Assembly: GCF_003918875.1 (NCBI RefSeq)
Contig: NW_025766769.1
Span: 620,001 to 684,000, forward strand
Length of the DNA: 64,000 nucleotides
DNA from: Haliotis rubra
Lineage: Eukaryota
Direction: 5' to 3'
Below, one piece after another: positions 9,071 through 44,436 of the stretch. The position numbers were made by a program, and so were the translations under genes. Every line of letters begins with the position of its first letter. The first letter of the stretch is position 1. Under the pieces are notes generated by a model. That model made no database searches and was not told where the DNA came from. It was given only the letters and a program-made list of their open reading frames with translations.

Positions 9071-9527
9071 CAAGACACTTAGACTGTAAGAGAATCATAT
9101 CTCAACATATTCATTTAAATAAAACGTCTATAGTTTTTTATACAAGTATTAGATATTTGCCGAAACAACTTTCACAATAATTTCTGGGAATACTATCTGT
9201 AAAAAGTAAAACCAAAATTATCAGTTTTGTACACTTGTTTTGGGGGTGCCAGGCGTCATTGATTTTGTACATGACATGCAAACAGGGGAGGTGTCACCTA
9301 CTTTGTACACAATATATTTATTTAATCTTTTTAATTTTATTTTTGAAATATATATATATATATTTTTGTTTTTTTTGGGGGGGAGGAGGGAGGTGGTCAT
9401 TCGCATTGTACATGCTTCTCCATAAAAATCATCATCACCCCCTTAGCCATAAATGTCAAGAAGTTTTCGGCACACCTTTCATTCCCTGAATCATAGCTCT
9501 CATGTGTTACCCTTTACGATCCTTCAG

Positions 9528-16709: not shown

Positions 16710-19700
16710 ATGTTGTTACTGGTGTGTCTCTCGGCCTGTGTCGCCTTGGCTGCAGGTAGTCATTTCTTGTAGTCATTTCTTGTAGTGCATTAATGACTGG
16801 ACGGGTGGCTGGGTTGTGGACAGGTGGCGGGGGCTGGCAGGTGTAGCAGCGATTGATAATATATTTATATAGATAACAGGTAAAGTAAAGTTGCTTGATT
16901 CCCACTCATGAATGTGCTAATATCTTCATTCTCATAACCACAAGCTTCTTCCACCGTTTATCACACATCGCACAGCTGGAATATTGCAGAGTGCAACGTA
17001 TAGCTCTGAACTCCCAAGCCTCCTACTCTAACCCAACCCGCCCACAACCTGCACCTTACACGCCCACTACCCCAGCCCGCCCACAACCTGCACCTTACAC
17101 GCCACACCCACTACCCCAGCCCACCAACAACCTGCACCTTACACGCAACACCCACTACCCCAGCCCACCAACAACCTGCACCTTACACGCCCACTACACC
17201 AGCCCACTCACAACCTACATCTTACACGCCTACTACCCCAGCCCACCAACAACCTGCTCCTTACACGCCCACTATCCAAACCCACCCACAACCTAAGCCT
17301 TACACGCCCACTACCCCAGCCCCGAGGGTTGTTCAATTCTGTAGTATAGGGATTATAGGGTTGTTTAAATCTGTAGTATAGGGATTAGAGGGTTGTCTAA
17401 GTCTGTAATATAGGGATAAGAGGGTTGTCTAAGTCTGTAATAAAGGGATTAGAAGGTTGTTTAAGTCTGTAGTATAAGGATTAGAGGGTTGTCTAAGCCT
17501 GTAATATAGGGATTAGAGGTTAGTTTAAGTCTGTAGTATAAGGATTAGAGGGTTGTCTAAGTCCGTAGTAAGGGGATTAGAGGGATCTTTAAGTCTGTAG
17601 TATAGGGATGAGAGGGTTGTTTAAGTCTATAGTATAGAGATTAGAGGGTTGTCTAAGTCTGTAATATAGGGATTACAGGGTTGTGTAAGTCCGTAGTATA
17701 GGGATTAGTGGGGTTTTAAGTCTGTACTATAGGGATTAGAGGGTTGTCTAAGTCTATAGTATAGAGATTAGAGGGTTGTCTAAGTCTGTAATACAGGGAT
17801 TAGAGGGTTGTCTAAGTCTGTAGTATAGGGGTAAGTGGGGTTTCAAGTCTGTAGTAAAGCGATTAGTGGGTTGTTTAATTCTGTAGTATAAGGATTAGAG
17901 AGTTGTTGAAGTCCGTAGTATACGGATTAGAGGGTTGTTGAAGTCTGTAGTATATGGATTAAAGGGTTGCCTAAGTCTGTAGTATTGGGATTAGAGGGTT
18001 GTCTAAGTCTGTAATAAAGGGATTAGAAGGTTGTCTTAGTCTGTAATATAGGGATAAGAGGGTTGTCTTAGGCTGTAATATAGGGATTAGAGGGTTGTTT
18101 AAGTCTGTAGTATAAGGATTAGAGGGTTGTCTAAGTCTGTAATATAGGGATTAGAGGGTTGTTTAAGTCTGTAATATAAGGATAAGAGGGTTGTCTAAGT
18201 CTGTAATATAGGGATTAGAGGGTTGTTTAAGTCTGTAGTATAATGATTAGGGGGTTGTCTAAGTCTGTAAAATGGGGATTAGAGGGTTGTCTAAGCCTGT
18301 AATATAGGGGTTAGAGGTTAGTTTAAGTCTGTAGCCTGTAGGGATACTGTAGTATAATGATTAGAGGGTTGTCTAAGTCTGAAGTAAAAGGATTAGAGGC
18401 TTGTCTAAGTCTGTAGTATTGGGATTAGAGGGTTGTTTAAGTTTGTAAGTCTGTAGCATAGGGATACTGTAGTATAATGATTAGAGGGTTGTCTAAGTCT
18501 GTAAAATAGGTTTAAAGGGTTGTTTAAGTCTGTAATATAGGGATAAGAGGGTTGTCTAAGTCAGTAATGTATGGATTAGAGGGTTGTTTAAGTCTGTAAT
18601 ACAGGGATTAGAGGGTTGTTTAAGTCTGTAGTATAGGGATTAGAGGGTTGTCTAAGTCAGTAATGTAGGGATTAGAGGGTTGTCTAAGTCAGTAATGTAG
18701 GGATTAGAGGGTTGTTTAAGTCTGTAGTATAATGATTAGGGGGTTGTCTAAGTCTGTAAAATGGGGATTAGAGGGTTGTCTAAGCCTGTAATATAGGGAT
18801 TAGAGGTTAGTTTAAGTCTGTAGTATTGGGATTAGAGGGTTGTTTAAGTTTGTAAGTCTGTAGTATAGGGATACTGTAGTATAATGATTAGAGGGTTTAA
18901 GTTTGTAAGTCTGTAGTATAGGGATACTGTAGTATAATGATTAGAGGGTTGTCTAAGTCTGAAGTAAAAGGATTAGAGGGTTGTCTAAGTCTGTAGTATA
19001 GGGATTAAAGGGTTGTCTAAGTCTGTAGTATAGTGATTAGAGTGATTACACCTTACACACCCGTACCCCAGCCCACCCACAAGCTGCACCTTACATACCC
19101 AGTACCCCAGCCCACCCACAACCCACATCTTATACGTCCACTACCCCAGCCCCCCACAACCCACACCTTACACGCCCACTACCCCAACCCACCCGAAACT
19201 TGCTCCTTACACGCCCACTACCCCAGCCCACCCACAACCGACACCTTAAATGACAACTACCCCAGCCCACCCACAACCTACACCTTACACGCCCACTACC
19301 CCAGCCCACCCACAACCTGCACCTTACACGCCCACTACCACAGCCCACCCACAACCTACACCTTACACGTCCACTACCCCAGCCCACCCACAACCTACAC
19401 CTTACACGCCCACTACCCCAGCCCACCCACAACCTACACCTTACACGCCCACTACCCCCAGCCCACCCGCAACTTGCTCCTTACACGCCCACTACCCCAG
19501 CCCACCCACAACCCACACCTTACACGCCCACTACCCCAGCCCACCCACAACCCACACCTTACACGCCCACTACCCCAGCCCACCCACAACCCACACCTAC
19601 ACGCCCACTACCCCAGCCCACCCACAACCCACACCTTAAATGTCAACTACCCCAGCCCACCCACAACCCACACGTTAAACGCCCACTACCCCAGCCCACC

Positions 19701-22700
19701 CACAACCTGCACCTTACATGTCCACTACCCCAGCCAACCCACAACCTACACCTTACACACTCACTACCCCAGCCCACCCACAACCTACACCTTACACGCC
19801 CACTACCCCAGCCCACCCACAACCTACACCTTACACGCCCACTACCCCAGCCCACCCATAACCTGCACCTTACACGCCCACTACTCCAGCCCACCCACAA
19901 CCTACACCTTACACGCCCACTACCCCAGCCCATCTACAACCTGCACCTGACATGTCCACTACCCCAGCCCCCGTGTACTCACTAACAACACAGGTACGTA
20001 CACACCTGTACATGTACTCACTAACAACACAGGTACGTACACACTTGTACATGTACTCACTAACAACCCAGGTACGTACACATCTGTACATGTACACACT
20101 ATCAACACAGGTACGTACACACTTGTACATGTACTCACTAACAACCCAGGTACGTACACATCTGTACATGTACACACTATCAACACAGGTACGTACACAC
20201 TTGTACATGTACTCACTAACAACCCAGGTACGTACACATCTGTACATGTACACACTATCAACACAGGTACGTACACACTTGTACATGTACTCACTAACAA
20301 CCCAGGTACGTACACATCTGTACATGTACACACTATCAACACAGGTACGTACACATCTGTACATGTACACACTATCAACCCAGGTACGTACACACTTGTA
20401 CATGTACTCACTAACAACCCAGGTACGTACACATCTGTACATGTACACACTATCAACACAGGTACTTACACACCTGTACATGTACACACTATCAACACAG
20501 GTACGCACACACTTGTACATGTACTCACTAATAGCACAGGAACGTACACACCTGTACATGTGTCACAGGGTTTTATAACACGATCTCTGGGTTGGTGTTC
20601 AACCTGCACCTGACATGTCCACTACCCCAGCCCCCGTGTACTCACTAACAACACAGGTACGTACACACCTGTACATGTACTCACTAACAGCACAGGTACG
20701 TACACACCTGTACATGTACACACTAACAACACAGGTACTTACACACTTGTACATGTACTCACTAACTACACATGTATGTACTTATACAGAAGCACTGTCT
20801 AACATTGGAAAGTTGAAGGGGGCCGGGGGGCGGCCTAGACTGTCCCGGTGTTAGGAATATTTTGTTGTGATGTACCAAGTAAGACGCCATCTCATTTGAA
20901 GGGGGAGGCGCTCTAGACTGTCCCGGTGATAGTATAATTCTGTTGTGATGTACCAAGTAAGACGCCATCTCATTTGAAGGGGGAGGCGCTCTAGACTGTC
21001 CCGGGGGTCACCGGTACTCTGCACGTGGCACGGCCTACTACCCCGCCGACAACCCGCTTGAGGGAGGCTTTGTGGACATGAGGGGCGCTAGACTCAGGAC
21101 GCTACAGGTAAGTAATCTGAGGATATAAAATGTTTGTTGGGGTTTCACCATAACATTAAAAACAACTCTTCCAAACTCTCAGATGACCTGCGTGAAATGC
21201 GTCTAACCACGTGATCCGTCTCCATGGCAGAAGATTCAGACGTTGGCTTGGATGTTCATGAGTCAGAGCTGGACATCTGAAATTTACTGATGTCAGGGTG
21301 ACGGTAGCCAAGTTGACGCCCGATGACCCCGAATAACATGCCAGATGCATGCATACCGACTACTAGTATCTGCTATAATCTCAGTTCCATTGGAAGTTTT
21401 CTCCTCTCCATGTTAACGTGTATAGATGAAACAGATATTCACAAGTTTTATACTCTTGAACGGTCAGGCAGAGATGCTTCTTTACATGATATGAGTGGCC
21501 ATAATGCTTCATATGCATATGGTCTGCGTTTTGGCGAACCCTTGCAAACCGAAACCTTGTTGTTCATTAACTGAAATATGCTACTAAACAAAGGCAACAT
21601 TAACATATCATCATCGTCGATAGCTACATCGCTATGATGAAATATTAGGGGGTGCTTAATTAAGTTCCATGTGTATATGATGAGGTCTATAGACACACTG
21701 AACTTGGTATGATAACATACAACTACTGACCTTATCATTATGTGACCTGTCCTGGACCCTGTTTCACAAAGCTCTCGTAAGCCTAAGATCTCGTAACTTT
21801 TCTCGTAGTATTCGTACCTCCTATACTGTAACATAGGGACTACGAATGCTATGAGAAAAGTTACGAGATTTTAGGCTTACGAGAGCTTTGTGAAACGGGG
21901 CCCTGGCACGACTATACTGACGTGTCCAATAGTGCAACAGGATACAGACATCGAACCTGGAGAACTGGCAACGCGTTTGGTTCAGCGATGAATCGCTTGG
22001 ATGAGACAACGTGTCTATTGACCTGGACACGAACGTTTTGCGCCGAACAGCGTTCGACAGGTGGACAGATTTGGCGGAGTGGGCGTCATGGTGTGGGGAG
22101 CCATGTCCTACACTGGTAGATCAGAGCTAGCGGTGGTTGAAGGCGATCTTACGGCAAATCGCTACATCGGCCAAATCCTGCGATCTCACCTCCTCCCAAT
22201 CCCATTCCCCACCAGAGGGAGCTGTTTCAGCACGACAACACTCGACCCCACACAGCTCGTGTAACAGGTGCCTATCTCGCCAGTGAAAACGTCAATGGTC
22301 TTCACTTGCCTTCCAATCCGCCTGATCTGAATCCGATCGAGCATCTATGGGACGTAAATGATCGACGCGTCCGTGAACGTCACCATCGTCATCAGACACT
22401 TGCCAACCGTTGCAGGAGGAATGGCGAAGAATTCCCCAAGCAGAAATCCGACGACTTCCAATCCCTTCCAAGGCGGTGTCCAGCAGTGACAACTGCAATG
22501 CAAGGGTGGTGTCACCGCTTACTGACCTGAACGCCCCCTTGTGTCCTCACATGTTCAGTGAGTGAACTGACTTAATGCTAACAGTGACAACAATACATAC
22601 GTTCATCCGTCTGTGTCGAATTCCGTTCATCTATGTTCAAGCTTAAAGGCCCCCTCTACACAGGACGGCGACCGCTCTGCCTTCTCTCTGCGTTCTAAAA

Positions 22701-25594
22701 ATGACCAGGACGCACAACGGTCGCCATACCTATGGTCCGGCGTCCCTTGTACCTTCCGCATACTACCTAAGATGCCATTTTTGACATTTTAGTGGCGTTC
22801 TTTGAACGTCCTAGGCGTCCTCTCTGCCTTCCCTCTGCCTTCTCTGAACCATCATATGCAAATAACGGCGTCCGTTCAGCGTTGCTTCTGCCTTCTAGCC
22901 GACCGTTGTGCCTTCCTTGTGCATTCTCTGGCGTTCGCTCTGCCTTCTCTCTGCGTCATGTGGCGACTGTTTGGCAACCTGCATACTCTAGGTATATAAG
23001 TACCCGACTACGACATTTTATCATTAGTTTCATACGAGCGGGCTAAATGAAATCATCTTATAACGACTTCAGTAAGCATGAACAATGAACTGCGTTTGCA
23101 AATAACTTTTTTGCAAGGTCAACAAGCATTGTTTTTCAACCAGATAGCCATTGCCATCTTAAATAGGAGGATAAATAGACGTAGAACAAGAAGCTTGAGA
23201 ACCCTGTGGGTCCGCCCATGGTTGACGCAACACAGACGGTTGCAATACGGGGACTACAACCAACTAATGCAAGAACTGCGTCTTGAAGATGAAGGGTCAT
23301 TCTACAATTATCTGAGAATAGAGCCAGCCCCTTTTGACGAACTTCTACAACGGGTTGGCCAAGGAATCGCAAAACAGAACACAAATCGGCGAGCGAATTT
23401 AGAGCATGGTTTGAAACTTGCCGTAACCATCAGGTTCCTTACAACTGGGGACAAATACCCAAGCCTCCAGTACCAGTATCGTGTGTCACGCAGTACGATC
23501 TCCATTTTTGTGCCTGAAGTTTGCAGAGCTATCCGAGATGAATATAAGAATGAAGCTCTCAAATGCCCAAGGAACTCCCAAGAGTGGAAAGCTGTTGTAG
23601 ATGACTTTCAGAGACGTTGGAACTTACCCCATGCATGTGGAGCCATTGATGGGAAACATATAGCCGTGCGTTGTCCACCAAACACAGGCAGTCTCTACCA
23701 CAACTATAAGGGATACTTCTCTCTTGTCCTTCTTGCATTAGTGGATGCAAATTATACATCTTTATGGTGTGATGTTGGTGTGTTGGAACGATGTCAGACA
23801 GTTAGATTTTCAATGAATCTGAAGTTCAGATTCTGAACTGAAGACCAGCCTCGAAGATGGCACAATAAACTTTCCAACTCCTGATCCATTGCCGAATGAT
23901 GACCGTGACATACCATTCTTCCTACTCGGGGATGATGTATTTGCCCTCAGAACCCACATGATGAAGCCATATTCAATAAGGGCACTCACCAAGGGGCAAC
24001 GGATCTTCAACTATTGTATTTGAAGTGTTGTGTATGGAACTGAATGGAATTGTTTGATGATGTTCATATATTTACTCTTTATTAGTCTTATGAGCTCGTT
24101 ATGGATATCTAGATTTCAAAATAAGATATCAATGTGTGTATATTGTTTGTTCTCAAATACCGTGGAAATCGGCAGTGCAAGACCTATTTATATGTAATCT
24201 GGAAAGGCAGAGTAAAGGCAGAGCGAACGCTGCGGTTGTTCAAAGGGATGCGCTAGTCGCTGAATGAAGGCAGAGTGAATGCTCAATGAACGCCAATGGA
24301 TGCTCGACAGACGCACAATGAAGGCAGAGAGAAGGCAGGGACAACGTGGCAGTTTACAAGGGTTTTATGTGGCGTCCTTTCGCCAACCGTTGTGCCTTCA
24401 CTCTGTGACCTCTGTCTTCCCTCTGTGACCTCTGTCTTCCGTCTGCGTCCTGTGATCAATCAACAATGACGGTGACCGCTCTGCGTTTGTTTAGAGCATG
24501 TTCAATCCAGTCGCCACTGCAGTGCCGTTCTGAGCCGTTCTTGGCATTGGCTCTGCCTTCTTTCTGCCTTCATGGCGATGGCTCTCTGCCTTCTCTCTGC
24601 GTTCCTCGTGCCTCCTTTGAGCGTCCAGTGGCGTTCTGAAAATTGTTAGAACGCAGAGGGAAGGCAGAGCGGTCGCCGTCCTGTGTAACGGGGGCCTTAA
24701 TTTACTTATGTACACTTAAATACGTTCAATACATTTCCATATTTCTGGCCTGTGCGTTTCTTTTTTATTAAAATGTTTAATATGATAAGGTCACTAAACA
24801 GCCTGAACATGGTATGGTAAGAGTCATGGTTTGGTAAGTGCAAGGACAATCTCAGTGAGATTTTCAAGCGTCTGCTGTTTTTTTTTTTTTATTTCAGCAA
24901 TTTCTTGCTGGTAGTGCGAGCTATGTGAGTGTTGCCATGGACAACCACGCCGGCATTGCCTACGGCACCAGCATCTGTATCCCCGAGATGAACCAGCGAT
25001 ACAACAAACACATTGTCTTTAAGGTGGGTCAGGTAACTTCGATCACCTGTATTACAGGTGTGGTAGACATCGTCACAGATAGCAATGTACACCAGTAGAT
25101 GAATCACAGATACAACAAGCACATTGTCTTTAAGGTGGGTCAGGTAACTTCGATCACCTGTATTACAGGTGTGGTAGACGCCGTCACAGATAGCAATGTA
25201 CACCAGCAGATGAATCACAGATACAACAAGCACATTGTCTTTAAGGTGGGTCAGGTAACTTCGATCACCTGTATTACAGGTGTGGTAGACACCGTCATAG
25301 ATAGCAATGTGTGTGTATACTATTTTCACATATGGATATCTAATAGCCTCCATCCCCGCATAATTATACAGTAACGACCCTAAGCGTCGCACATTTAGGG
25401 CTGCTAAATCCTTGTGTGATACTCATATATGACGTGGCAATGTTTAGCTGTGAATTGTTCTTTCTCCGAAGGTAGTAGACACGGGGTCAGCGTTCTTTGG
25501 TAAAGGTCACAGCCGTATTGACATCTGCGTCAGCTCCCAGGCCAACTCGTACGACTCCACAATCAACGGCCATCTCACCCTTGTCTTTCCTTGA
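16710..25594 (+). CDS. Secreted 3D-domain (MltA-like three-Asp, putative peptidoglycan lytic transglycosylase) protein, copy 1, 140 aa; join(16710-16755,20980-21107,24898-25023,25472-25594)
   Basis: GCCATG start and signal peptide MLLLVCLSACVALAA; GT-AG introns with phases 1,0,0; motifs GTAYYP, VAMD, YGT.I.IP, VVDTGSAF, RIDIC; AATAAA at about 25626; exons 2-4 almost identical to copy 2. Exon 1 assignment is less certain than exons 2-4. Confidence 0.8.
17030..17324. repeat. 39-bp C-rich minisatellite, left block
   Basis: CACCCACAACCTACACCTTACACGCCCACTACCCCAGCC units. Confidence 0.9.
17325..19040. repeat. 32-bp minisatellite (GAGGGTTGTCTAAGTCTGTAGTATAGGGATTA)
   Basis: About 50 diverged tandem units. 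Confidence 0.95.
19045..19972. repeat. 39-bp C-rich minisatellite, right block
   Basis: Same unit as 17030-17324; explains the HAHYPSPPTT ORF. Confidence 0.95.
19973..20770. repeat. 39-bp minisatellite (ACTAACAACACAGGTACGTACACACCTGTACATGTACTC)
   Basis: Tandem units with two alternating variants; junction 19938-20010 is re-duplicated at 20600-20672. Confidence 0.93.
21755..21902. mobile_element. Palindromic MITE with 3-bp CTG TSD
   Basis: Arms GACCCTGTTTCACAAAGCTCTCGTAAGCCTAAG... and ...CTTACGAGAGCTTTGTGAAACGGGGCC are reverse complements; CTG at 21752-21754 and 21903-21905. Confidence 0.85.
21930..22530 (+). pseudogene. Tc1/mariner DD34E transposase relic
   Basis: Frameshifted GGVGVMVWGAMSY...FQHDNTRPHTAR...PSNPPDLNPIEHLWD. 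Confidence 0.85.
22647..24697 (+). mobile_element. PIF/Harbinger DNA transposon, internally deleted, in intron 2 of 3D gene copy 1
   Basis: About 55-bp TIRs (AGGCCCC..TACACAGGACGGCGACCGCTCTGCCTTC.CTCTGCGTTCTAA); TAA TSD at 22644-22646 and 24698-24700; subterminal CTCTGCCTTC repeats; HARBI1-like ORF. Confidence 0.92.
23078..24022 (+). pseudogene. Harbinger transposase (HARBI1-like, DDE_Tnp_4), frameshifted and truncated
   Basis: KLAVTIRFLTTG, GAIDGKHI, YNYKGYFSLVLLALVDANY-like motif, frameshift near 23780-23836, then LLGDDVFALRTHMMKPY...IFNY followed by a stop. Confidence 0.9.
24987..25310. repeat. 111-bp repeat, 3 units, containing the exon end and 5' splice site of the 3D gene
   Basis: Unit = last 37 nt of the exon (GATGAACCAGCGATACAACAAACACATTGTCTTTAAG) + GTGGGT donor + intron start. 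Confidence 0.93.
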
Positions 25595-25829: not shown

Positions 25830-27805
25830 CAACAGGTGACTCGATAACAGGTGACATGATAACAGATGACATGATAACATATGGCATGGTAACAGGTGAC
25901 ATGATAACAGGTGACATGGTAACAGATGACATGGTAACAGATGACATGGTAACAGGTGACATGATAACAGGTGACATGGTAACAGGTGACATGATAACAG
26001 GTGACATGGTAACAAATGACACAACAACAGGTGACATGGTAACATATGACATGATAACAGGTGACATGGTAACAAGTGACATGATAACATGTGACATGGT
26101 AACAGGTGACATGGTAACAGGTGACATGATAACAGGTGACATGATAACATATGACATGATAACAGGTGACATGATAACAAATGACACAACAATAGGTGAC
26201 TCAACAACAGGTGACATGATAACATATGACATGATAACAGGTGACATGATAACAGGTGACATGATAACAAATGACACAACAACAGGTGACATGATAGTAG
26301 ATGACACAACAATAGGTGACTCAACAACAGGTGACATGATAACATATGACATGATAACAGGTGACATGATAACAAATGACACAACAACAGGTGACATGAT
26401 AACAGATGACACAACAACAGGTGACATGATAACAGATGACACAACAATAGGTGACTCAACAACAGGTGACATGATAACATATGACATGGTAACAGATGAC
26501 ATGATAACAAATGACACAACAACAGGTGACTCAACAACAGATGACATGATAACAAATGACACAACAACAGGTGACATGATAGTAGATAACACAACAATAG
26601 GTGACTCAACAACAGGTGACATGATAGCATATGACATGATAACAGGTGACATGATAACAAATGACACAACAACAGGTGACACAACAATAGGTGACTCAAC
26701 AACAGGTGACATGATAACATATGACATGATAACATATGACATGATAACAGGTAACATGATAACAGATGACACAACAATAGGTGACTCAACAACAGGTGAC
26801 ATGATAACAGGTGACATGATAACAGGTGACATGATAACAAATGACACAAGAACAGGTGACATGATAGTAGATGACACAACAATAGGTGACTCAACAACAG
26901 GTGACATGATAACATATGACATGATAACAGGTGACATGATAACAAATGACACAACAACAGGTGACATGATAACAGATGACACAACAACAGGTGACATGAT
27001 AACATATGACATGGTAACAGATGACATGATAACAAATGACACAACAACAGGTGACTCAACAACAGATGACATGATAACAAATGACACAACAACAGGTGAC
27101 ACACCGAGAGGTGACTCAACAACAGGTGACATGATAACAGGTGACATGATAACAGATGACACAACAATAGGTGACTCAACAACAGGTGACATGATAACAT
27201 GTGACATGATAACAGGTGACATGATAACAAATGACACAACAACAGGTGACATGATAGTAGATGACACAACAATAGGTGACTCAACAACAGGTGACATGAT
27301 AACATATGACATGATAACAGGTGACATGATAAGAAATGACACAACAACAGGTGACATGATAACAGATGACACAACAACAGGTGACATGATAACAGATGAC
27401 ACAACAACAGGTGATATGATAACAGATGACACAACAGCAGGTGACATGATAACAGATGATACAACAACAAGTGACATAATAACAGATGACACACTAACAG
27501 ATGATACAACAACAACAGGTGACATGATTACAGGTGGCACAACAATAGATGACACACCAATAGGTGACACAACAACAGGTGACACAACAACAGGTGACAT
27601 GATAATAGATGACACAACAACAGGTGACATGATAACAGATGATGTGACAACAGATGACATGATGACATATGGCTCGATAACAGGTGACACAATAACAAGT
27701 GACACGATAACAGGTGACATGATAACAAATGATACGACAACAAATGACATGATAGCAGATGACTCGATAACAGGTGACAATAACACGTGACATGATAACA
27801 GATGG
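25830..27805. repeat. 15-bp minisatellite (AACAGGTGACATGAT and variants) with higher-order blocks
   Basis: About 130 units; gives 584-700-aa low-complexity ORFs on both strands. Confidence 0.95.
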
Positions 27806-28307
27806 CACGAAAACAGGTTATGGATTTTGGACAAAGCTTTCTTTCAGGTTCGATACAATTGCGCGCACGCGTACGTGCGTGCGCGTGCGTGCGTACGTGT
27901 GTGCGTGCGTGTGTGTGTACGTGTTGATTCCCAAGTTGAAACTATGTAAGAATACACAATGCTGTAAATTCTAAAAAAACACTTCTAAATTCTCAATATA
28001 TCATGCATCTTTCAATACATAATCCTGAAGACATCGCTTCGACTTTTAGTTCGTGATTCACAATTTGCACATGCATGTTCGCATAGGGAGCCACATTTGG
28101 ATGTTGGAGTCTTTGTAAGAAGCTAAAGCATTATACTCGTATAAACAGCGACTGTTTGGCTCTCAGATGGAACAAACATATATTCTAACCGTAAATGACG
28201 CTTAACGCTGTATTAACTGTTGGGAACATTCCTGGCTTGAGACCAATTGGTTTCATGTCAGCCCACACCTTCGACCTAGCCACGCCTAGCTTGATTTGAC
28301 ATTACCT

Positions 28308-35014: not shown

Positions 35015-38000
35015 ATGATGACTTTGGTCGCTGTTGCCGCCTTGGCAATAAATCTACATGGAGCTAGCGCTGCTCAGTGCGCATGCGCTAGAGGGAATGT
35101 TCACGTCCGGTCAGGTGCGGGGACGAGTCATGCGGTCCTCGGTACGCTGATCAGCGGAAGTTGCGTCACTTATGAAGGCGACCAGAGCAGCGGCTGGGTG
35201 CACGTGGACTATAACGGCAGGGTAGGTGGTTGACCTGGGTTACATGTGATGTGTGGACTGCCACGGCAGGGTAGGTGGTTGACCTGGGTGACATGTGATG
35301 TGTGGACTGCCACGGCAGGGTAGGTGGTTGGCCTGGGTTACATGTGATGTGTGGACTACCACGGCAGGGTAGGTGGTTGACCTGGGTTACATGTGCTGGG
35401 TGGACTACCACGGCAGGGTAGGTGGTTGACCTGGGTGACATGTGATGTGTGGACTACAACGGCAGGGTAGGTGGTTGACCTGGGTTACATGTGATAGGTG
35501 GTCTACCACGGCAGGGTAGGTGGTTGACGTGGGTTACATGTGATGGGTGGACTACCACGGCAGGGTAGGTGGTTGACCTGGGTTACATGTGCTGGGTGGA
35601 CTACCACGGCAGGGTAGGTGTTTGACCTGGGTTACATGTGCTGGGTGGTCTACCACGGCAGGGTAGGTGGTTGACCTGGGTGGTCTACCACGGCCGGGTA
35701 GGTGGTTGACCTGGGTGACATGTGCTGGGTGGACTACCACGGCAGGGTAGGTGGTTGACCTGGGTTACATGTGCTGGGTGGACTACCACGGCAGGGTAGG
35801 TGGTTGACCTGCGTGCAGGTGGACTATTGATGTTCTAGTATCATTTAATAACCATCAAATAGCCAATTCTCTAAAGGTGTTTTACTCAACTGAACTTAAA
35901 TGAGATCATTTCATGTGTGAAATCTATGTATAAATATTAAGTATTCATCTCAAAAGCAATGTCTTAAGAACTACAGCCTTCTACATCATTCTGATGTGTT
36001 GATCCATGAAGGTTCGGGTTAGAATGAACCTTCAGTAACCCATGCTTGTCGTAAGAGGCGACTAACGGGATCGGGTGGTCAGGCTCGCTGGCTTGGTTGA
36101 CACTGGTCATCGGTTCCCAATTGCGCAGATCGATGCTCATGCTGTTGATCACTGGATTTTCTGGTCCAGACTCGATTATTTACAGACCGCCGATATATAG
36201 CTGGAATATTGCTGAGTGCAGCGTAAAACTAAACTCACTCACTCATGTGTTGATCCACTACATCTGATGTGTTGATCCACTACATCTGTTATGTTGATCC
36301 ACTACATCTGATGTGTTGATCCACTACATCTGATTGTCTGGTATTTCTTACAGAGCGGGTGGATCGCGGGAAATTATGTCAACATTCAGACTTGCTCGGG
36401 GGGTTCCGTCACCTCAGGTAAACGTCGTTGTTCCAAGTCATGATTTATCCTCATTTGCCACAAACTATAACATGATGTTCATCATCATAAACTACATATA
36501 TAACATGATGTTCATCATCATAAACTACATATATAACATGATGTTCATCATCATAAACTACATATATAACATGATGTTCATCATCATAAACTACATATAT
36601 AACATGATGTTCATCATCATAAACTACATATATAACATGATGTTCATCATCATAAACTGAAACATAATGCTCGTTATCATAAACTATAACATGAAGTAAG
36701 ACGCCATCTCATTTGAAGGGGGAGGCGGCCTAGACTGTTCCGGGGGTCACCGGTACTCTGCACGTGGCACGGCCTACTACCCCGCCGACAACCCACTGGA
36801 GGGAGGCTTCGTGGACATGAGGGGCGCTAGACTCAGGACGCTACAGGTAAGCTTATTCTGACTGTCATATATGAAAGAAAAGCATCTTGTAGTGGCTCGA
36901 AGACTCTAGATTGTCACACATTGAAGGGTGTTCCTGTAGGCAAGTTCTAATATCCAAGTGCTAGTTTACCGATCGTACGTTCAGCTCACAATGGCTGGAT
37001 GTACTTGTGCCAAATGTTTACGACACCGACGTGCGTGACAGGTGCGTATAACAACGTTATTATTCTTGACATGGTTTTGTTTCTTGCTGTTTAACTAAGC
37101 TAGCCTCAAGCTACATGACTTCAAAACTGATCTATTCCTGCAGGATACAATTACATGCAGTCAATTTAGTAGCTTTTTGTAATCGGCTTGCTTGGCTCCA
37201 ACCCGGACCCCACTGGTGCTTGACACGAAGACGAGTGGGTGTATACACCCCAAGATCACTGCTGGCAGACTTGCACACCGCCATCTAGTCGTCCAGAGAC
37301 CCCGGAACACGATCTGTAAGACCACTACCCCGTCGTCCAGTGCACTGGAACACGATCTGTATGACCACTACCTCGTCGTCCAGTGCACTGGAACACGATC
37401 TGTATGACCACTACCTCGTCGTCCAGTGCACTGGAACACATTCTGTGTGACCACTACCCCGTTGTCCAGTCAACCGGAACACGATCTGTATGACCACATA
37501 TCTGTTAGATTGAATATATTATTTTCAAACGATTGTTTTATTCCAGCAATTTCTTGCTGGAAGTGCGAGCTATGTGAGTGTTGCCATGGACAACCACGCC
37601 GGCATTGCCTACGGCACCAGCATCTGTATCCCCGAGATGAACCAGCGATACAACAAACACATTGTCTTTAAGGTGGGTCAGGTAACTTCGATCACCTGTA
37701 TTAAAAGTGTGGTAGACACCGTCACAGATAGCAATGTACACCAGTAGATGAATCAGCGATACAACAAACGCATTGTCTTTAAGGTGGGTCAGGTAACTTC
37801 GATCACCTGTATTACAGGTGTGGTAGACACCGTCACAGATAGCAATGTACACCAGTAGATGAACCAGCGATACAACAAACACATTGTCTTTAAGGTGGGT
37901 CAGGTAACTTCGATCACCTGTATTACAGGTGTGGTAGACACCGTCAAAGATAGCAATGTACACCAGTAGATGAATCAGCGATACAACAAACACAGTGACT

Positions 38001-41000
38001 TTAAGGTGGGTCAGGTAACTTCGATCACCTGTATTACAGGTGTGGTAGACACCGTCACAGATAGCAATGTACACCAGTAGATGAATCAGCGATACAACAA
38101 ACACAGTGACTTTAAGGTGGGTCAGGTAACTTCGATCACCTGTATTACAGGTGTGGTAGAGACCGTCACAGATAGCAATGTACACCAGTAGATGAATCAC
38201 AGATACAACAAACACAGTGACTTTAAGGTGGGTCAGGTAACTTCGATCACCTGTATTACAGGTGTGGTAGAGACCGTCACAGATAGCAAAGTACACCAGT
38301 AGATGAATCAGCGATACAACAAACACATTGACTTTAAGGTGGGTCAGGTAACTTCGATCACCTGTATTACAGGTGTGGTAGAGACCGTCACAGATAGCAA
38401 TGTACACCAGTAGATGAATCAGCGATACAACAAACACATTGACTTTAAGGTGGGTCAGGTAACTTCGATCACCTGTATTACAGGTGTGGTAGAGACCGTC
38501 ACAGATAGCAATGTACACCAGTAGATGAATCACAGATACAACAAACACAGTGACTTTAAGGTGGGTCAGGTAACTTCGATCACCTGTATTACAGGTGTGG
38601 TAGAGACCGTCACAGATAGCAATGTACACCAGTAGATGAATCAGCGATACAACAAACACATTGTCTTTAAGGTGGGTCAGGTAACTTCGATCACCTGTAT
38701 TACAGGTGGGGTCAGGTAACTTCGATCACCTGTATTACAGGTGTGGTGGTAGACCGTCACATGATCAGCGATACAACAATGTACACCCCGTAGTAGATGA
38801 ATCACCTGTATTACAGGTGTGCGATACAACAAACACACATTGACTTTAAGGTGGGTCAGGTAACTTCGATCACCTGTATTACAGGTGTGTAGACACCGTC
38901 ACAAACAGATAGCAATGTACACCAGTAGATGAATCACAGATACAACAAACACATTGACTTTAAGGTGGGTCAGGTAACTTCGATCACCTGTATTACAGGT
39001 GTGGTAGAGACCGTCACAGATAGCAATGTACACCAGTAGATGAATCAGCGATACAACAAACACATTGACTTTAAGGTGGGTCAGGTAACTTCGATCACCT
39101 GTATTACAGGTGTGGTAGAGACCGTCACAGATAGCAATGTACACCAGTAGATGAATCACAGATACAACAAACACAGTGACTTTAAGGTGGGTCAGGTAAC
39201 TTCGATCACCTGTATTACAGGTGTGGTAGAGACCGTCACAGATAGCAATGTACACCAGTAGATGAATCAGCGATACAACAAACACATTGACTTTAAGGTG
39301 GGTCAGGTAACTTCGATCACCCGTATTAAAGGTGTGGTGGACACCGTCACAGATAGCAATGTACACCAGTAGATGAATCACAGATACAACAAACACAGTG
39401 ACTTTAAGGTGGGTCAGGTAACTTCGATCACCTGTATTACAGGTGTGGTAGAGACCGTCACAGATAGCAATGTACACCAGTAGATGAATCAGCGATACAA
39501 CAAACACATTGTCTTTAAGGTGGGTCAGGTAACTTCGATCACCTGTATTACAGGTGTGGTAGAGACCGTCACAGATAGCAATGTACACCAGTAGATGAAT
39601 CACAGATACAACAAACACAGTGACTTTAAGGTGGGTCAGGTAACTTCGATCACCTGTATTACAGGTGTGGTAGAGACCGTCACAGATAGCAATGTACACC
39701 AGTAGATGAATCAGCGATACAACAAACACAGTGACTTTAAGGTGGGTCAGGTAACTTCGATCACCTGTATTACAGGTGTGGTAGAGACCGTCACAGATAG
39801 CAATGTACACCAGTAGATGAATCAGCGATACAACAAACACAGTGACTTTAAGGTGGGTCAGGTAACTTCGATCACCTGTATTACAGGTGTGGTAGACACC
39901 GTCACAGATAGCAAAGTACACCAGTAGATGAATCAGCGATACAACAAACACATTGACTTTAAGGTGGGTCAGGTAACTTCGATCACCTGTATTACAGGTG
40001 TGGTAGACACCGTCACAGATAGCAATGTACACCAGTAGATGAATCACAGATACAACAAGTACATTGTCTTTAAGGTGGGTCAGGTAACTTCGATCACCTG
40101 TATTACAGGTGTGGTAGAGACCGTCACAGATAGCAATGTACACCAGTAGATGAATCACAGATACAACAAACACAGTGACTTTAAGGTGGGTCAGGTAACT
40201 TCGATCACCTGTATTACAGGTGTGGTAGAGACCGTCACAGATAGCAATGTACACCAGTAGATGAATCAGCGATACAACAAACACATTGACTTTAAGGTGG
40301 GTCAGGTAACTTCGATCACCTGTATTACAGGTGTGGTAGAGACCGTCACAGATAGCAATGTACACCAGTAGATGAATCACAGATACAACAAACACAGTGA
40401 CTTTACAGGTGGGTCAGGTAACTTCGATCACCCGTATTACAGGTGTGGTGGAGGTAACTTCGACCGTCACAGATAGCAATGTACACCAGTAGATGAATCA
40501 GCGATACAACAAACACATTGACTTTAAGGTGGGTCAGGTAACTTCGATCACCTGTATTACAGGTGTGGTAGAGACCGTCACAGATAGCAATGTACACCAG
40601 TAGATGAATCAGCGATACAACAAACACATTGACTTTAAGGTGGGTCAGGTAACTTCGATCACCTGTATTACAGGTGTGGTAGACGCCGTCACAGATAGCA
40701 ATGTACATATACATCACCAGTCTGGAATACTAAAAACACAGGATGGAATACGATGAACAAGATTTATCATGGAACGTTCTTCTTGAACTGATTTTGCAAT
40801 TAAAAAGGCATCTTACGTACAGTCGAACCCCGTTATCTCGAAGTCATATTTGTCGAATCCCAGATCGTGTCGGCTTATAGTCAGGATATATGTAGCGACA
40901 CTGTATTGAAAACCTGTTTCCTGTGTCGAAGTACAAGTGTCTGATTATCAGTTGTCTAGAACTTATTTTACGTCCTAAAGGTTGCATTTACGTTGGAACC

Positions 41001-42508
41001 TACCCTGAAACGTCGAGCTAATAATTACTAAACTACTTCATATTGGTTTAGGATTTGTATCGAGTGTAGTGCCCTTACTGCTCCTGTGTGTTTAGCTGTG
41101 TAGCAACCACAGCTACTGTTCCTGCTCCTGTGTGTTTAGCTGTGTAGCAACCACAGCTACTGTTCCTGCTCCTGTGTGTTTAGCTGTGTAGCAACCACAG
41201 CTACTGTTCCTGCTCCTGTGTGTTTAGCTGTGTAGCAACCACAGCTACTGTTACTGCTCCTGTGTGTTTAGCTGTGTAGCAACCACAGCTACTGTTCCTG
41301 CTCCTGTGTGTTTAGCTGTGTAGCAACCACAGCTACTGTTACTGCTCCTGTGTGTTTAGGTGTGTAGCAACCACAGCTACTGTTACTGCTGCTGTGTGTT
41401 TGGCTGTGTAGCAGCCACAGCTACTGTTACTGCTCCTGTGTGTTTAGATGTGTAGCAACCACAGCTACTGTTACTGCTCCTGTGTGTTTAGATGTGTAGC
41501 AACCACAGCTACTGTTACTGCTCCTGTGTGTTTAGATGTGTAGCAACCACAGCTACTGTTACTGCTCCTGTGTGTTTAGGTGTGTAGCAACCACAGCTAC
41601 TGTTACTGCTCCTGTGTGTTTAGGTGTGTAGCAACCGCAGCTACTGTTACTGCTCCTGTGTGTTTAGGTGTGTAGCAACCGCATCTACTGTTACTGCTCC
41701 TGTGTGTTTAGCTGTGTAGCAACCACAGCCACTGTTGCTACTCCTGTGTGTTTAGCTGTGTAGCAACCACAGCTACTGTTACTGCTCCTGTGTGTTTAGC
41801 TGTGTAGCAACCGCAGCTACTGTTACTGCTCCTGTGTGTTTAGGTGTGTAGCAACCGTAGCTACTGTTACTGCTCCTGTGTGTTTAGGTGTGTAGCAACC
41901 GCAGCTACTGTTACTGCTCCTGTGTGTTTAGCTGTGTAGCAACCACAGCTACTGTTGCTACTCCTGTGTGTTTAGCTGTGTAGCAACCACAGCTACTGTT
42001 ACTGCTCCTGTGTGTTTAGGTGTGTAGCAACCGCAGCTACTGTTACTGCTCCTGTGTGTTTAGCTGTGTAGCAACCGCAGCTACTGTTGCTGCTCCTGTG
42101 TGTTTAGGTGTGTATCAACCACAGCTACTGTTACTGCTCCTGTGTGTTTAGGTGTGTATCAACCACAGCTACTGTTACTGCTCCTGTGTGTTTAGGTGTG
42201 TAGCAACCGCAGCTACTGTTACTGCTCCTGTGTGTTTAGCTGTGTAGCAACCGCAGCTACTGTTGCTGCTCCTGTGTGTTTAGCTGTGTATCAACCACAG
42301 CTACTGTTACTTCATGTTTCTATTGCTGCGCATGTCCAGGAAGTATCCATGTCTTTGTTTAGTATATTTAGGATTACTCCTGCAGGTTGTAGACACGGGG
42401 TCAGCGTTCTTTGGTAAAGGTCACAGCCGTATTGACATCTGCGTCAGTTCCCAGGCCAACTCGTACGACTCCACCATCAACGGCCATCTCACCCTTGTCT
42501 TTCCTTGA
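35015..42508 (+). CDS. Secreted SH3b + 3D-domain protein (putative peptidoglycan-binding lytic transglycosylase), copy 2, 215 aa; join(35015-35221,36354-36417,36719-36846,37547-37672,42386-42508)
   Basis: Signal peptide MMTLVAVAALAINLHGASA; SH3b signature NVHVRSGAGTSHAVLGTL...GWVHVDYNGR|SGWIAGNYV; Gly/Ser linker; 3D motifs GTAYYP/VAMD/YGT/DTG/IDI; GT-AG introns with phases 0,1,0,0 and an open frame; AATAAA at about 42558. Confidence 0.88.
35203..35826. repeat. 49-bp minisatellite containing the exon-1 end and 5' splice site
   Basis: Unit GTGGACTACCACGGCAGG|GTAGGTGGTTGACCTGGGTTACATGTGATGT, about 13 units. Confidence 0.95.
36007..36244 (+). mobile_element. SINE, 5'-truncated, with TGTCGTAAGAGGCGACTAA core (Nin-like, tentative)
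   Basis: (ACTC)n tail and 3' end shared with the other SINEs; 13-bp TSD ATGTGTTGATCCA at 35994-36006 and 36245-36257. Confidence 0.85.
36465..36690. repeat. 33-bp minisatellite filling intron 2 of 3D gene copy 2
   Basis: AACATGATGTTCATCATCATAAACTACATATAT, about 6 units. Confidence 0.93.
37290..37500. repeat. 43-bp tandem repeat in intron 3
   Basis: GGAACACGATCTGTATGACCACTACCTCGTCGTCCAGTGCACT, about 5 units. Confidence 0.9.
37636..40710. repeat. 111-bp repeat, about 27-28 units, containing the exon end and 5' splice site
   Basis: Same unit as 24987-25310; explains the 373- and 498-aa minus-strand repeat ORFs. Confidence 0.96.
41075..42310. repeat. 44-bp minisatellite in intron 4
   Basis: TGTGTTTAGCTGTGTAGCAACCACAGCTACTGTTACTGCTCCTG, about 28 units. 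Confidence 0.96.
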
Positions 42509-42829
42509 TCTTCACGTCACATCTGGTCAGCCAAGTGCCATGTATATCCGCCACCTCAATAAATGCACCATCTTGTTGTGTGGTTTGAACTATTCTCCTT
42601 CTAGGTCGTCTCATGGCGGTTGCCTTGAGGTGGAAGTGTTTCTTCCGGGTTCGACACCGTAGTGTGAGAAGCTCGTTTATGGTGTCGTTCGTTTCATCTA
42701 GTTAACTCTAGTTTTTAAACGATCCATTATTTTGTGTTTTAAAAAATTACAGATCGGCTCAAATCCGCCTATTTATGATTTGAGAACGAATAATTGATAA
42801 GCGTCAAACCAGTGGTGGCTGACTAGCCT

Positions 42830-43347: not shown

Positions 43348-44436
43348 GCTTCTTTGAGTGGCATTTTTTATACTAGAGCACGACGTTTCAATACAAGATC
43401 TTGTATACATTCTATGCTCTTTGTATCATTGGCTTCCACTGGCCTTTATGTTTATCTTGTATACATTCTATCCTCTGTGTATCATTGGCTTCCGTTGGCC
43501 TCTATGTTTATCTTGTATACATTCTATGCTCTGTGTATCATTGGCTTCCACTGGCCTTTATGTTTATCTTGTATACATTCTATGCTCATTGTATCATTGG
43601 CTTCCGTTGGCCTCTATGTTTATCTTGTATACATTATATGCTCTGTGTATCATTGGCTTCCACTGGCCTTTATGTTTATCTTGTATACATTCTATGCTCA
43701 TTGTATCATTGGCTTCCGTTGGCCTCTATGTTTATCTTGTAAACATTCTATGCTCTGTGTATCACTGGCTTCCGCTGGCCTCTATGTCTTTATTTTGTAT
43801 ACATTCTCTGCTCTGTGTATCACTGGCTTCCACTGGCCTCTGTGTTAATCTTGTATACATTCTATGCTCTGTGTATCATTGGCTTCCACTGGCCTCTATG
43901 TTTATCTTGTATACATTCTATGCTCTTTGTATCATTGGCTTCCACTGGCCTCTTTGTTTATCTTGTATACATTCTATGCTCTGTGTATCATTGGCTTCCA
44001 CTGGCCTCTATGTTTATCTTGTATACATTCTATGCTCATTGTATCATTGGCTTCCGTTAGCCTCTATGTTTATCTTGTAAACATTCTCTGCTCTTTGTAT
44101 CATTGGCTTCCGCTGGCCTCTTTGTTAATCTTGTATACATTCTATGCTCTGTGTATCATTGGCTTCCGCTGGCCTCTTTGTTAATCTTGTATACATTCTG
44201 TGCTCTGTGTATCATTGGCTTCCACTGGCCTCTATGTTTATCCCTGTAATCCTCTGTCATCCCTGTATTTGTTATCATCACATTGTTATTCCGCCTTGAC
44301 TTGTTAATTAGTCTTGTTGTATATACATCACCTGTTTTCTCCCTGTACCATTCTCACTTGAAAGCGATACAAGAACCTGTATCGAAAAGTCGTGCTCTAG
44401 AATAAAAGAAGTTGTCATCCATATATACTTGTTCTA
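43348..44436. mobile_element. Non-autonomous insertion with inverted ends (Penelope-like, tentative) carrying an internal 56-bp array
   Basis: 12-bp TSD CCCTGAGGAATG at 43336-43347 and 44437-44448; 43370-43406 is the reverse complement of 44365-44403. Confidence 0.7.
43398..44240. repeat. 56-bp minisatellite
   Basis: TATCTTGTATACATTCTATGCTCTGTGTATCATTGGCTTCCACTGGCCTCTATGTT, about 15 units. Confidence 0.95.

Follow-up and report, generated by a model that had tools for sequence, protein, structure and literature searches.

A candidate SH3b-tethered lytic transglycosylase of abalone, from a protostome family of probable bacterial descent

How has a protein built like a bacterial cell-wall enzyme come to be encoded by an intron-containing gene of an abalone, and what might it do there? 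The question is posed by gene B (LOC124280482), which lies in a 64,000-nucleotide stretch of Haliotis rubra DNA (NCBI RefSeq assembly GCF_003918875.1, contig NW_025766769.1, positions 620,001 to 684,000 of the forward strand; this whole stretch is called the window, and gene positions are counted from its first letter). The reading favoured here, with moderate confidence, is that the product of gene B is a secreted lytic transglycosylase of the MltA/YuiC type, tethered by an SH3b module and derived from bacteria in an early protostome. Animals attack the bacterial wall with lysozymes, with amidases of the peptidoglycan recognition protein (PGRP) family and with a few borrowed bacterial enzymes. 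No animal-encoded MltA/YuiC-type lytic transglycosylase was found in the literature searched, full-text searches on animal 3D-domain proteins returned no paper on the animal family, and gene-transfer papers on clams and myriapods do not mention it. The family, which extends across molluscs and some arthropods, is old and apparently undescribed.

Gene structure, domains and predicted active site

An exact spliced search of the window returned a single model for gene B, on the + strand, with five exons (Table 1) separated by introns that are GT-AG throughout and lie in phases 0, 1, 0 and 0. The spliced product of 215 amino acids plus stop is identical at every letter to XP_046572377.1, 'uncharacterized protein LOC124280482 [Haliotis rubra]', and the same protein (P0001, 215 aa) was the best match when exon 4 alone was used as the query against 1.84 billion representative proteins. 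Gene B is therefore confirmed as a real gene, annotated in RefSeq with exactly the same structure, though uncharacterised. Its orthologues in H. rufescens (exons of 210/64/128/126/123 nt) and H. asinina (217/64/122/126/123 nt) have the same structure, the annotated model of the latter adding a doubtful 5' exon. Integration in an animal genome is evident from the GT-AG introns, the 1.35-Mb scaffold and flanks that carry animal repeats; a chance open reading frame (ORF), a pseudogene and contamination were each considered as the origin of the model and rejected. A weak tblastn match at 9290-9331 (- strand) was likewise dropped, as it lies inside an unrelated short ORF. The N-terminus of the protein is hydrophobic, with an Ala-x-Ala site before residue 20 as judged by eye, and the AlphaFold2 model places a low-confidence helix at residues 3-12.

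The two halves of the protein differ in how readily they are recognised. The Pfam SH3_3 model (PF08239) matches residues 28-78 with 45 bits against a cutoff of 27, and exon 1 alone still scores 34.3 bits; in structure comparison, residues 20-86 have an SH3b fold, with Z scores of 9-10 against the SH3b domains of NlpC/P60 enzymes, YrvJ and the phiSM101 endolysin. Pfam run on single exons gave only this SH3_3 match (exon 1) and none for the 3D part, and an NCBIfam scan matched Ent models to the SH3b part and nothing else. The remainder of the protein is recognised through its predicted fold. AlphaFold2 models are of high confidence (pLDDT 88.9 at full length; pLDDT 90.4 and pTM 0.85 for the domain only), and in them residues 94-215 form a double-psi beta-barrel whose nearest solved structures are YuiC and MltA: Bacillus subtilis YuiC (4wlk) aligns with Z 10.0 and a root-mean-square deviation of 2.3 Å over 93 residues at 25% identity, and MltA with Z 9.3 for Neisseria gonorrhoeae, 8.6 for Escherichia coli and 7.1-8.3 for other species. 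The diffocin baseplate protein reaches Z 9.3, and generic barrels are weaker in the same comparison (kiwellin, Z 6.9). A Foldseek search of the PDB with the domain-only model gave four matches at E <= 0.001, all of them to YuiC chains or the diffocin baseplate protein, the TM-scores for YuiC being 0.55-0.57. The nearest AlphaFold DB clusters are named as 3D-domain proteins, and UniProt and IMG automatically label relatives as '3D domain-containing protein'.

In YuiC, D129, D151 and D162 together with T91 and Y93 are substrate-binding and catalytic residues, of which D129 and Y93 are conserved, and the enzyme yields a 1,6-anhydro product (PMC4499186). By order, spacing and aligned ranges, YuiC T91, Y93, D129, D151 and D162 would correspond to T108, Y110, D148, D178 and D192 of the gene B protein. 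The three Asp residues are invariant in 28/28 mollusc sequences, and T108 and Y110 are kept in 27/28. Among 198 other family members each of the five residues is kept in 183-198 (92-100%), the three Asp in 194-198, and the three Asp with Y110 at 98-100%. Constraint between abalone orthologues is also strong, the ratio of nonsynonymous to synonymous substitution rates (dN/dS) being 0.10-0.15 for the whole protein, 0.05-0.075 for the catalytic-type domain and 0.20-0.27 for the SH3b part; gene B is under purifying selection. The insect homologues (P0034, P0048, P0046 and P0036) form a long-branched clade in which the catalytic motif is partly lost, the third Asp being replaced by Glu in Diaphorina and by Val in Macrosteles, and the DTG motif having become DTS, DTH, DTD or DSS; these insect copies may have changed function.

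Much of this had been anticipated in an earlier note, made from the DNA letters and without database searches. The five GT-AG exons of compatible phase and the open 215-residue protein that it described are those of the annotated gene; the motifs it named are all present (TAYY at residues 108-111, VAMD at 145-148, YGT at 155-157, DTG at 178-180 and IDI at 191-193), as is the Gly/Ser linker; its SH3b-like module is a true SH3b domain; and the structural comparison that it proposed with the double-psi beta-barrel of MltA yielded the Z scores given above. Its assignment of a 3D domain is upheld by the fold and by the aligned catalytic residues but not by the Pfam match, which stays below threshold. 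Its statement that the gene had been missed, made of the ORF track, does not hold for RefSeq, whose annotation contains exactly this model.

Origin of the barrel domain and of the SH3b cassette

In each database search the best 120 matches were examined, out of about 850 proteins in the case of the family profile (E <= 1e-5), and some unnamed matches were looked up. Among the matches listed, the domain occurs in gastropods (Haliotis, Pomacea, Lottia, Patella, Gigantopelta and Littorina), in a chiton (Liolophura) and in bivalves (Mytilus, Magallana, Crassostrea, Dreissena, Mya, Mercenaria, Mactra, Sinanodonta and Tegillarca), and look-ups added arthropods, namely the millipede Chamberlinius and the insects Diaphorina, Macrosteles, Timema and Augochlora. 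The named eukaryotes among these matches are molluscs, arthropods and one partial algal record (Phaeothamnion) that groups with bacteria. The homologues of the millipede, Diaphorina, Dreissena and Augochlora have ordinary animal genes as their neighbours, the contigs ranging from 0.36 Mb to more than 100 Mb. When exact exon models were placed on the domain alignment, a phase-0 intron after ...TLQ (residue 133) proved common to Haliotis, Dreissena, the millipede, the psyllid and the bee, and another after residue 175 to Haliotis, Dreissena, the millipede and the bee; a 126-nt exon has the same boundaries in Haliotis, Dreissena, Chamberlinius and Augochlora, and a phase-1 intron stands just before the domain in gastropod, bivalve, millipede, psyllid and bee. 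Given that two intron positions and the 126-nt exon are shared between the phyla, the gene would have been present before molluscs and arthropods separated, and the simplest reading is that their common ancestor probably carried it with these introns and that it was later lost many times. Two members of the family contain two tandem copies of the domain in one protein (P0003, 310 aa; P0070 of Pomacea, 220 aa). In Augochlora pura the divergent homologue has as its immediate neighbour a gene for a PGRP (Amidase_2), encoded on the other strand (L087, 6001-7069 and 7180-13069).

Outside animals, the matches listed come mostly from bacterial metagenomes. In the profile search their identity to the reference mollusc domain sequence is about 47-61%, and the bacterial members taken together, which number in the hundreds, stand at 50-65% identity; PG_binding_1, PG_binding_3 or SH3_3 modules are frequent among them. 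Eighty confirmed bacterial loci, counted with one genome per species, are distributed over Myxococcota (about 40, including the isolate Labilithrix luteola), Bdellovibrionota (about 11), proteobacterial ('Burkholderiales') metagenome-assembled genomes (9), Vulcanimicrobiota/Eremiobacterota (7), Acidobacteriota (4), Melainabacteria/Cyanobacteria (3) and a few loci of other lineages. They are concentrated in predatory or bacteriolytic groups, that is Myxococcota, Bdellovibrionota and Melainabacteria-like cyanobacterial metagenome-assembled genomes, and also in Vulcanimicrobiota, a distribution that suggests that predatory bacteria use the enzyme to kill prey and that it may have begun as a prey-killing tool. 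In a maximum-likelihood tree of 72 domains, a branch with support of 95/91 has 38 rows of bacterial or metagenomic origin on one side and 34 rows, the animal side, on the other, and a single animal clade, with 33 rows constrained together, is not rejected (approximately unbiased test, p = 0.40). Since the tree is unrooted, the direction of transfer, from bacteria to animal, is argued from the fact that both the superfamily and its substrate are bacterial.

The SH3b module appears to have a different history. Over residues 1-83 the protein shares 72% identity with the N-terminus of an H. rubra PGRP (P0135, SH3_3 + Amidase_2), and the likeness extends to gene structure: exon 1 of the PGRP gene ends at the homologous codon in phase 0 with 77% nucleotide identity to exon 1 of gene B, and its exon 2, of 58 nt where that of gene B has 64 nt, ends in phase 1 with 88% identity. 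In a local comparison among fetched proteins the abalone SH3b scores 117 bits against the Haliotis PGRP and about 70 against a Patella PGRP, but 27-33 bits against bivalve SH3b-3D proteins and 19-27 against bacterial ones; a database search restricted to the SH3b gave 5 candidates and was uninformative. The bacterial SH3b-3D proteins themselves nest within the bacterial clade of the tree. Because the SH3b is closest to that of mollusc PGRPs and the intron positions and phases are the same, the fusion with the 3D-like domain was most likely made inside an animal genome, by exon shuffling, the conserved phase-1 intron serving as the junction for a 5' cassette of two exons. Transfer of the SH3b together with the 3D domain was considered and rejected, as the SH3b is far closer to mollusc PGRPs and the bacterial SH3b-3D proteins fall inside the bacterial clade. 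The locus offers in this respect a clean example of exon shuffling, in which one phase-1 intron docks alternative targeting modules shared with PGRP genes.

With regard to history, the expectations of the earlier note fared unevenly. Related proteins do exist in other invertebrates, as it had supposed, in molluscs, a millipede and insects, and the idea of a bacterial-type enzyme in an intron-containing animal gene is sustained in that the closest non-animal relatives are bacterial. Domestication of a bacterial gene agrees with those relatives, but the event is neither recent nor specific to abalone, the introns shared by molluscs and arthropods pointing to acquisition before their split. A joint transfer of SH3b and 3D is not favoured, the SH3b most likely having been joined in the animal through 5' exons shared with PGRPs.

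Proposed function and rival explanations

The lytic transglycosylase reading is drawn from the fold, from conservation at the predicted active site, from the modules for wall binding that occur in the family, from the connection with PGRP genes and from the strong constraint. That the gene B protein is secreted and enzymatically active, and what its substrate and biological role would be, is predicted from sequence and modelled structure, and on that basis the following scheme may be proposed. An early protostome probably acquired the catalytic domain from bacteria; the acquired gene would then have gained three introns, still common to molluscs and arthropods, and N-terminal modules (none, SH3b or Cys-rich) would later have been swapped in at the conserved phase-1 intron. 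In the abalone protein the SH3b module would bind peptidoglycan and so tether the secreted protein, and the minimal MltA/YuiC-type ('3D') double-psi beta-barrel would probably cleave the glycan strand, with D192 as putative catalytic acid/base, positioned by T108. The likely role would be extracellular attack on, or processing of, the bacterial cell wall, in defence, in digestion, or in both. The earlier note, too, had pictured a putative lytic transglycosylase, with an antibacterial or microbiome-shaping role. PGRP receptors sense 1,6-anhydro-muropeptides as tracheal-cytotoxin-like signals, and a further step can be imagined in which a working MltA/YuiC-type lytic transglycosylase, present in protostomes since before the mollusc/arthropod split, acts as a host enzyme that makes soluble ligands for the animal's own PGRP system. 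This would fit with the SH3b cassette shared with PGRP genes and with the PGRP neighbour in the bee, although as a complete scenario it is doubtful. If the protein is active, it would represent a new enzymatic arm of invertebrate immunity or digestion, distinct from lysozymes and amidases, and would make anhydro-muropeptides, which are strong immune signals, in a family that is widespread in aquaculture molluscs (abalone, oysters, mussels and clams).

Several results weigh against an enzyme of bacterial descent and are best considered together. The Pfam 3D model (PF06725) matches residues 144-201 at 13.9 bits (E 0.065), below its cutoff of 23.8, and among 60 family members 8 reach E<0.01, the highest score seen, 21.9 bits for P0018, again being below the cutoff, so that it is the fold and the motifs that carry the 3D assignment. 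When family alignments were used as profiles against PDB sequences, chance matches alone came up (EndoS, syncytin and exotoxin 6, for example). Expansins, kiwellin and papain inhibitor, which stand lower in the fold lists, are non-enzymatic double-psi beta-barrels, and a shared fold is therefore not proof of activity. As to origin, the tree has no outgroup, and animals and bacteria are simply the two sides of one branch; the family was seen through the best 120 of 850 matches, leaving room for other eukaryotic phyla; and P0160 (L088, 700-1245), placed among the animal-side rows, is probably bacterial, being intronless, provided with a lipobox and adjacent to a DUF3817 gene. P0160 may be close to the donor lineage, or its position may be a long-branch artefact.

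Whether the barrel cuts or merely binds is the question on which the most serious rival turns. The protein might be a non-catalytic peptidoglycan sensor or opsonin whose barrel groove and SH3b only bind the wall, alongside PGRPs: the 5' cassette is common to a PGRP gene, the bee homologue adjoins a PGRP gene, insect homologues persist despite partial loss of the catalytic motif, and many double-psi beta-barrel proteins, among them the lower Foldseek matches, are binders. Such a role is nonetheless unlikely, in that the mollusc residues aligned with the catalytic set of YuiC and MltA are conserved (Asp in 28/28, T108 and Y110 in 27/28) and the dN/dS of the domain, 0.05-0.075, is more typical of a retained active site. 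An active enzyme might instead be directed at chitin or another polymer of N-acetylglucosamine, in digestion, in turnover of radula or shell matrix, or in antifungal defence. The fold does accept chitin oligomers, YuiC turning penta-N-acetylglucosamine into a 1,6-anhydro product and MltA binding chitohexaose (PMC4499186); the fused modules, however, are wall-binding in animals and bacteria alike (SH3_3, PG_binding_1, PG_binding_3), and the SH3b cassette is shared with PGRPs, which makes this substrate quite improbable.

A comparably low probability attaches to the absence of any bacteria-to-animal transfer, whether because the gene is an ancient vertical eukaryotic one or because the bacterial copies are animal-derived. 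The introns shared by molluscs and arthropods do attest to long vertical descent in animals, and the unrooted tree and the share of matches viewed leave space for such a history. Set against these are the bacterial nature of the 3D/MltA superfamily and of its substrate, the hundreds of members of the subfamily in at least 6 bacterial phyla, the restriction of named eukaryotes among the matches listed to molluscs, few arthropods and the one partial Phaeothamnion record grouping with bacteria, and the nesting of the probably bacterial P0160 on the animal side. That gene B should be an annotation artefact, a pseudogene or bacterial contamination is by now largely refuted and barely credible: its introns are full of minisatellites that repeat real splice donors and could disturb splicing, but its ORF is unbroken, three Haliotis species agree in exon structure, dN/dS is 0.10-0.15, and GT-AG introns, animal repeats in the flanks and a 1.35-Mb scaffold place it in the animal genome. 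The favoured reading thus remains that of a secreted, SH3b-tethered lytic transglycosylase of bacterial derivation.

The wider locus and comparison with known systems

Gene B has a tandem paralogue in the window, gene A, in which a signal peptide is joined directly to the 3D-like domain (Table 1). The RefSeq model of gene A begins at an ATG further upstream (16617) and has 31 extra residues ahead of the signal peptide; in H. asinina the start of the orthologue corresponds to 16710. The tandem order is kept in H. asinina, and the exon structure is kept in the orthologous loci of H. asinina and H. rufescens. Between the paralogues within a species dS is about 0.10-0.12, lower than the 0.31-0.53 between orthologues of different species, and the similarity of genes A and B is confined to the exons and one minisatellite, which together indicate concerted evolution of the domain exons. 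In H. asinina, the orthologue of gene A has a 162-nt, phase 1-1, Cys-rich exon at the phase-1 intron site (L003, 4165-4326); no counterpart was found in the H. rubra window, where intron 1 of gene A (16756-20979) is filled with minisatellites instead. The gene A intron at 21108-24897 holds transposon remnants at 22061-22530 and 23078-23836, a Tc1/mariner-like fragment (weak DDE_3 match) and a Harbinger-like ORF of 252 aa (weak DDE_Tnp_4 match).

Table 1. Positions of gene A, gene B and associated repeats in the window
Feature	Position	Strand	Description
Gene A exon 1	16710-16755	+	46 nt; signal peptide only; ends phase 1
Gene A exon, homologue of gene B exon 3	20980-21107	+	
Gene A exon, homologue of gene B exon 4	24898-25023	+	followed by 3 copies of the 111-bp unit of gene B intron 4 (24986-25310)
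Gene A last exon, homologue of gene B exon 5	25472-25594	+	
Gene B exon 1	35015-35221	+	207 nt; start codon, signal-peptide-like segment aa 1-19 (...GASA/AQ), first part of SH3b; ends phase 0
Gene B intron 1 minisatellite	35204-35815	+	49-bp unit, made of exon 1 end and 5' splice site; 12 copies of GGCAGG/GTAGGTG
Gene B exon 2	36354-36417	+	64 nt; end of SH3b and Ser/Gly linker; ends phase 1
Gene B exon 3	36719-36846	+	128 nt; Gly linker and start of 3D-like domain (GTAYYP, EGGFVD); ends phase 0 after ...TLQ
Gene B exon 4	37547-37672	+	126 nt; VAMD (D148) and YGT; ends phase 0
Gene B intron 4 minisatellite	37635-40707	+	111-bp unit, two arrays; last 36 nt of exon 4 and 5' splice site
Gene B intron 4 second minisatellite	41075-42311	+	44-bp unit, about 28 copies
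Gene B exon 5	42386-42508	+	123 nt; DTG (D178), RIDIC (D192, C194), C-terminus, stop codon
AATAAA polyadenylation signal	42558-42563	+	50 nt downstream of gene B stop

The minisatellite of gene B intron 1 and the 111-bp one of intron 4 repeat the gene's own exon ends. Read-through into intron 1 meets a stop after 3 codons; in the first array region of intron 4 the string of exon 4 end and donor occurs in 26 exact copies, the real one included, and each unit closes with an in-frame TAG. Similar arrays have arisen in gene A, from an acceptor and exon start at 20835-21004 and from an exon end and 5' splice site at 24986-25310, and in the unlinked PGRP gene (L001, 13729-14774) five further copies of the exon end ...GYNSVGLG stand downstream of it. 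Minisatellites built from exon ends and splice sites thus look like a recurring process in this genome and not a quirk of one gene. More generally, long minisatellite arrays with units of 30-111 bp are unusually abundant in the window (25831-27818, 17324-18854, 19047-20781 and 43398-44242) and produce spurious long ORFs on both strands.

The adoption of a bacterial cell-wall enzyme by animals is an event of a known kind, but the age, the breadth and the modular build of this family are unexpected, as comparison with related systems makes clear. YuiC/Sps of Firmicutes and MltA (PF06725) have the same barrel core and a similar order and spacing of Thr-x-Tyr and three Asp (PMC4499186); the abalone sequence is too dissimilar to them for matches above the Pfam threshold or to PDB profiles, is encoded by an animal gene with introns, and belongs to a subfamily with its own signature of EGGFVD, VAMD, DTG and RIDIC with a conserved Cys. 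The SpsE group and the Ent proteins of Bacillus cereus have the same domain order, with SH3b before 3D (PMC4499186), and Ent NCBIfam models match the abalone SH3b; that SH3b is nevertheless nearest to mollusc PGRPs (117 and about 70 bits, against only 19-27 for bacterial SH3b-3D proteins), and the fusion would have been assembled separately in the animal. In aphid RlpA, the closest parallel in the literature searched, a barrel of bacterial lytic-transglycosylase type likewise sits in an animal genome, fused to knottin or Cys-rich modules (PMC9116674), and the Cys-rich exon of some mollusc members is a point of likeness. The barrel of aphid RlpA, however, is of the PF03330 family and not 3D, and it occurs in aphids only, whereas the present family extends over molluscs and arthropods and has a much greater age. 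The Dae proteins of ticks and other animals are bacterial wall-degrading amidases adopted for defence, and differ in fold, in distribution and in the bond attacked, which is peptide and not glycan. A further comparison is with the molluscs' own SH3b-PGRPs, which have been described in oysters (PMC11810698): proteins such as MgPGRP5 of Magallana gigas have the same signal-peptide and SH3b cassette, but the effector that it carries is an amidase-type PGRP domain where the gene B protein has a 3D-like barrel.

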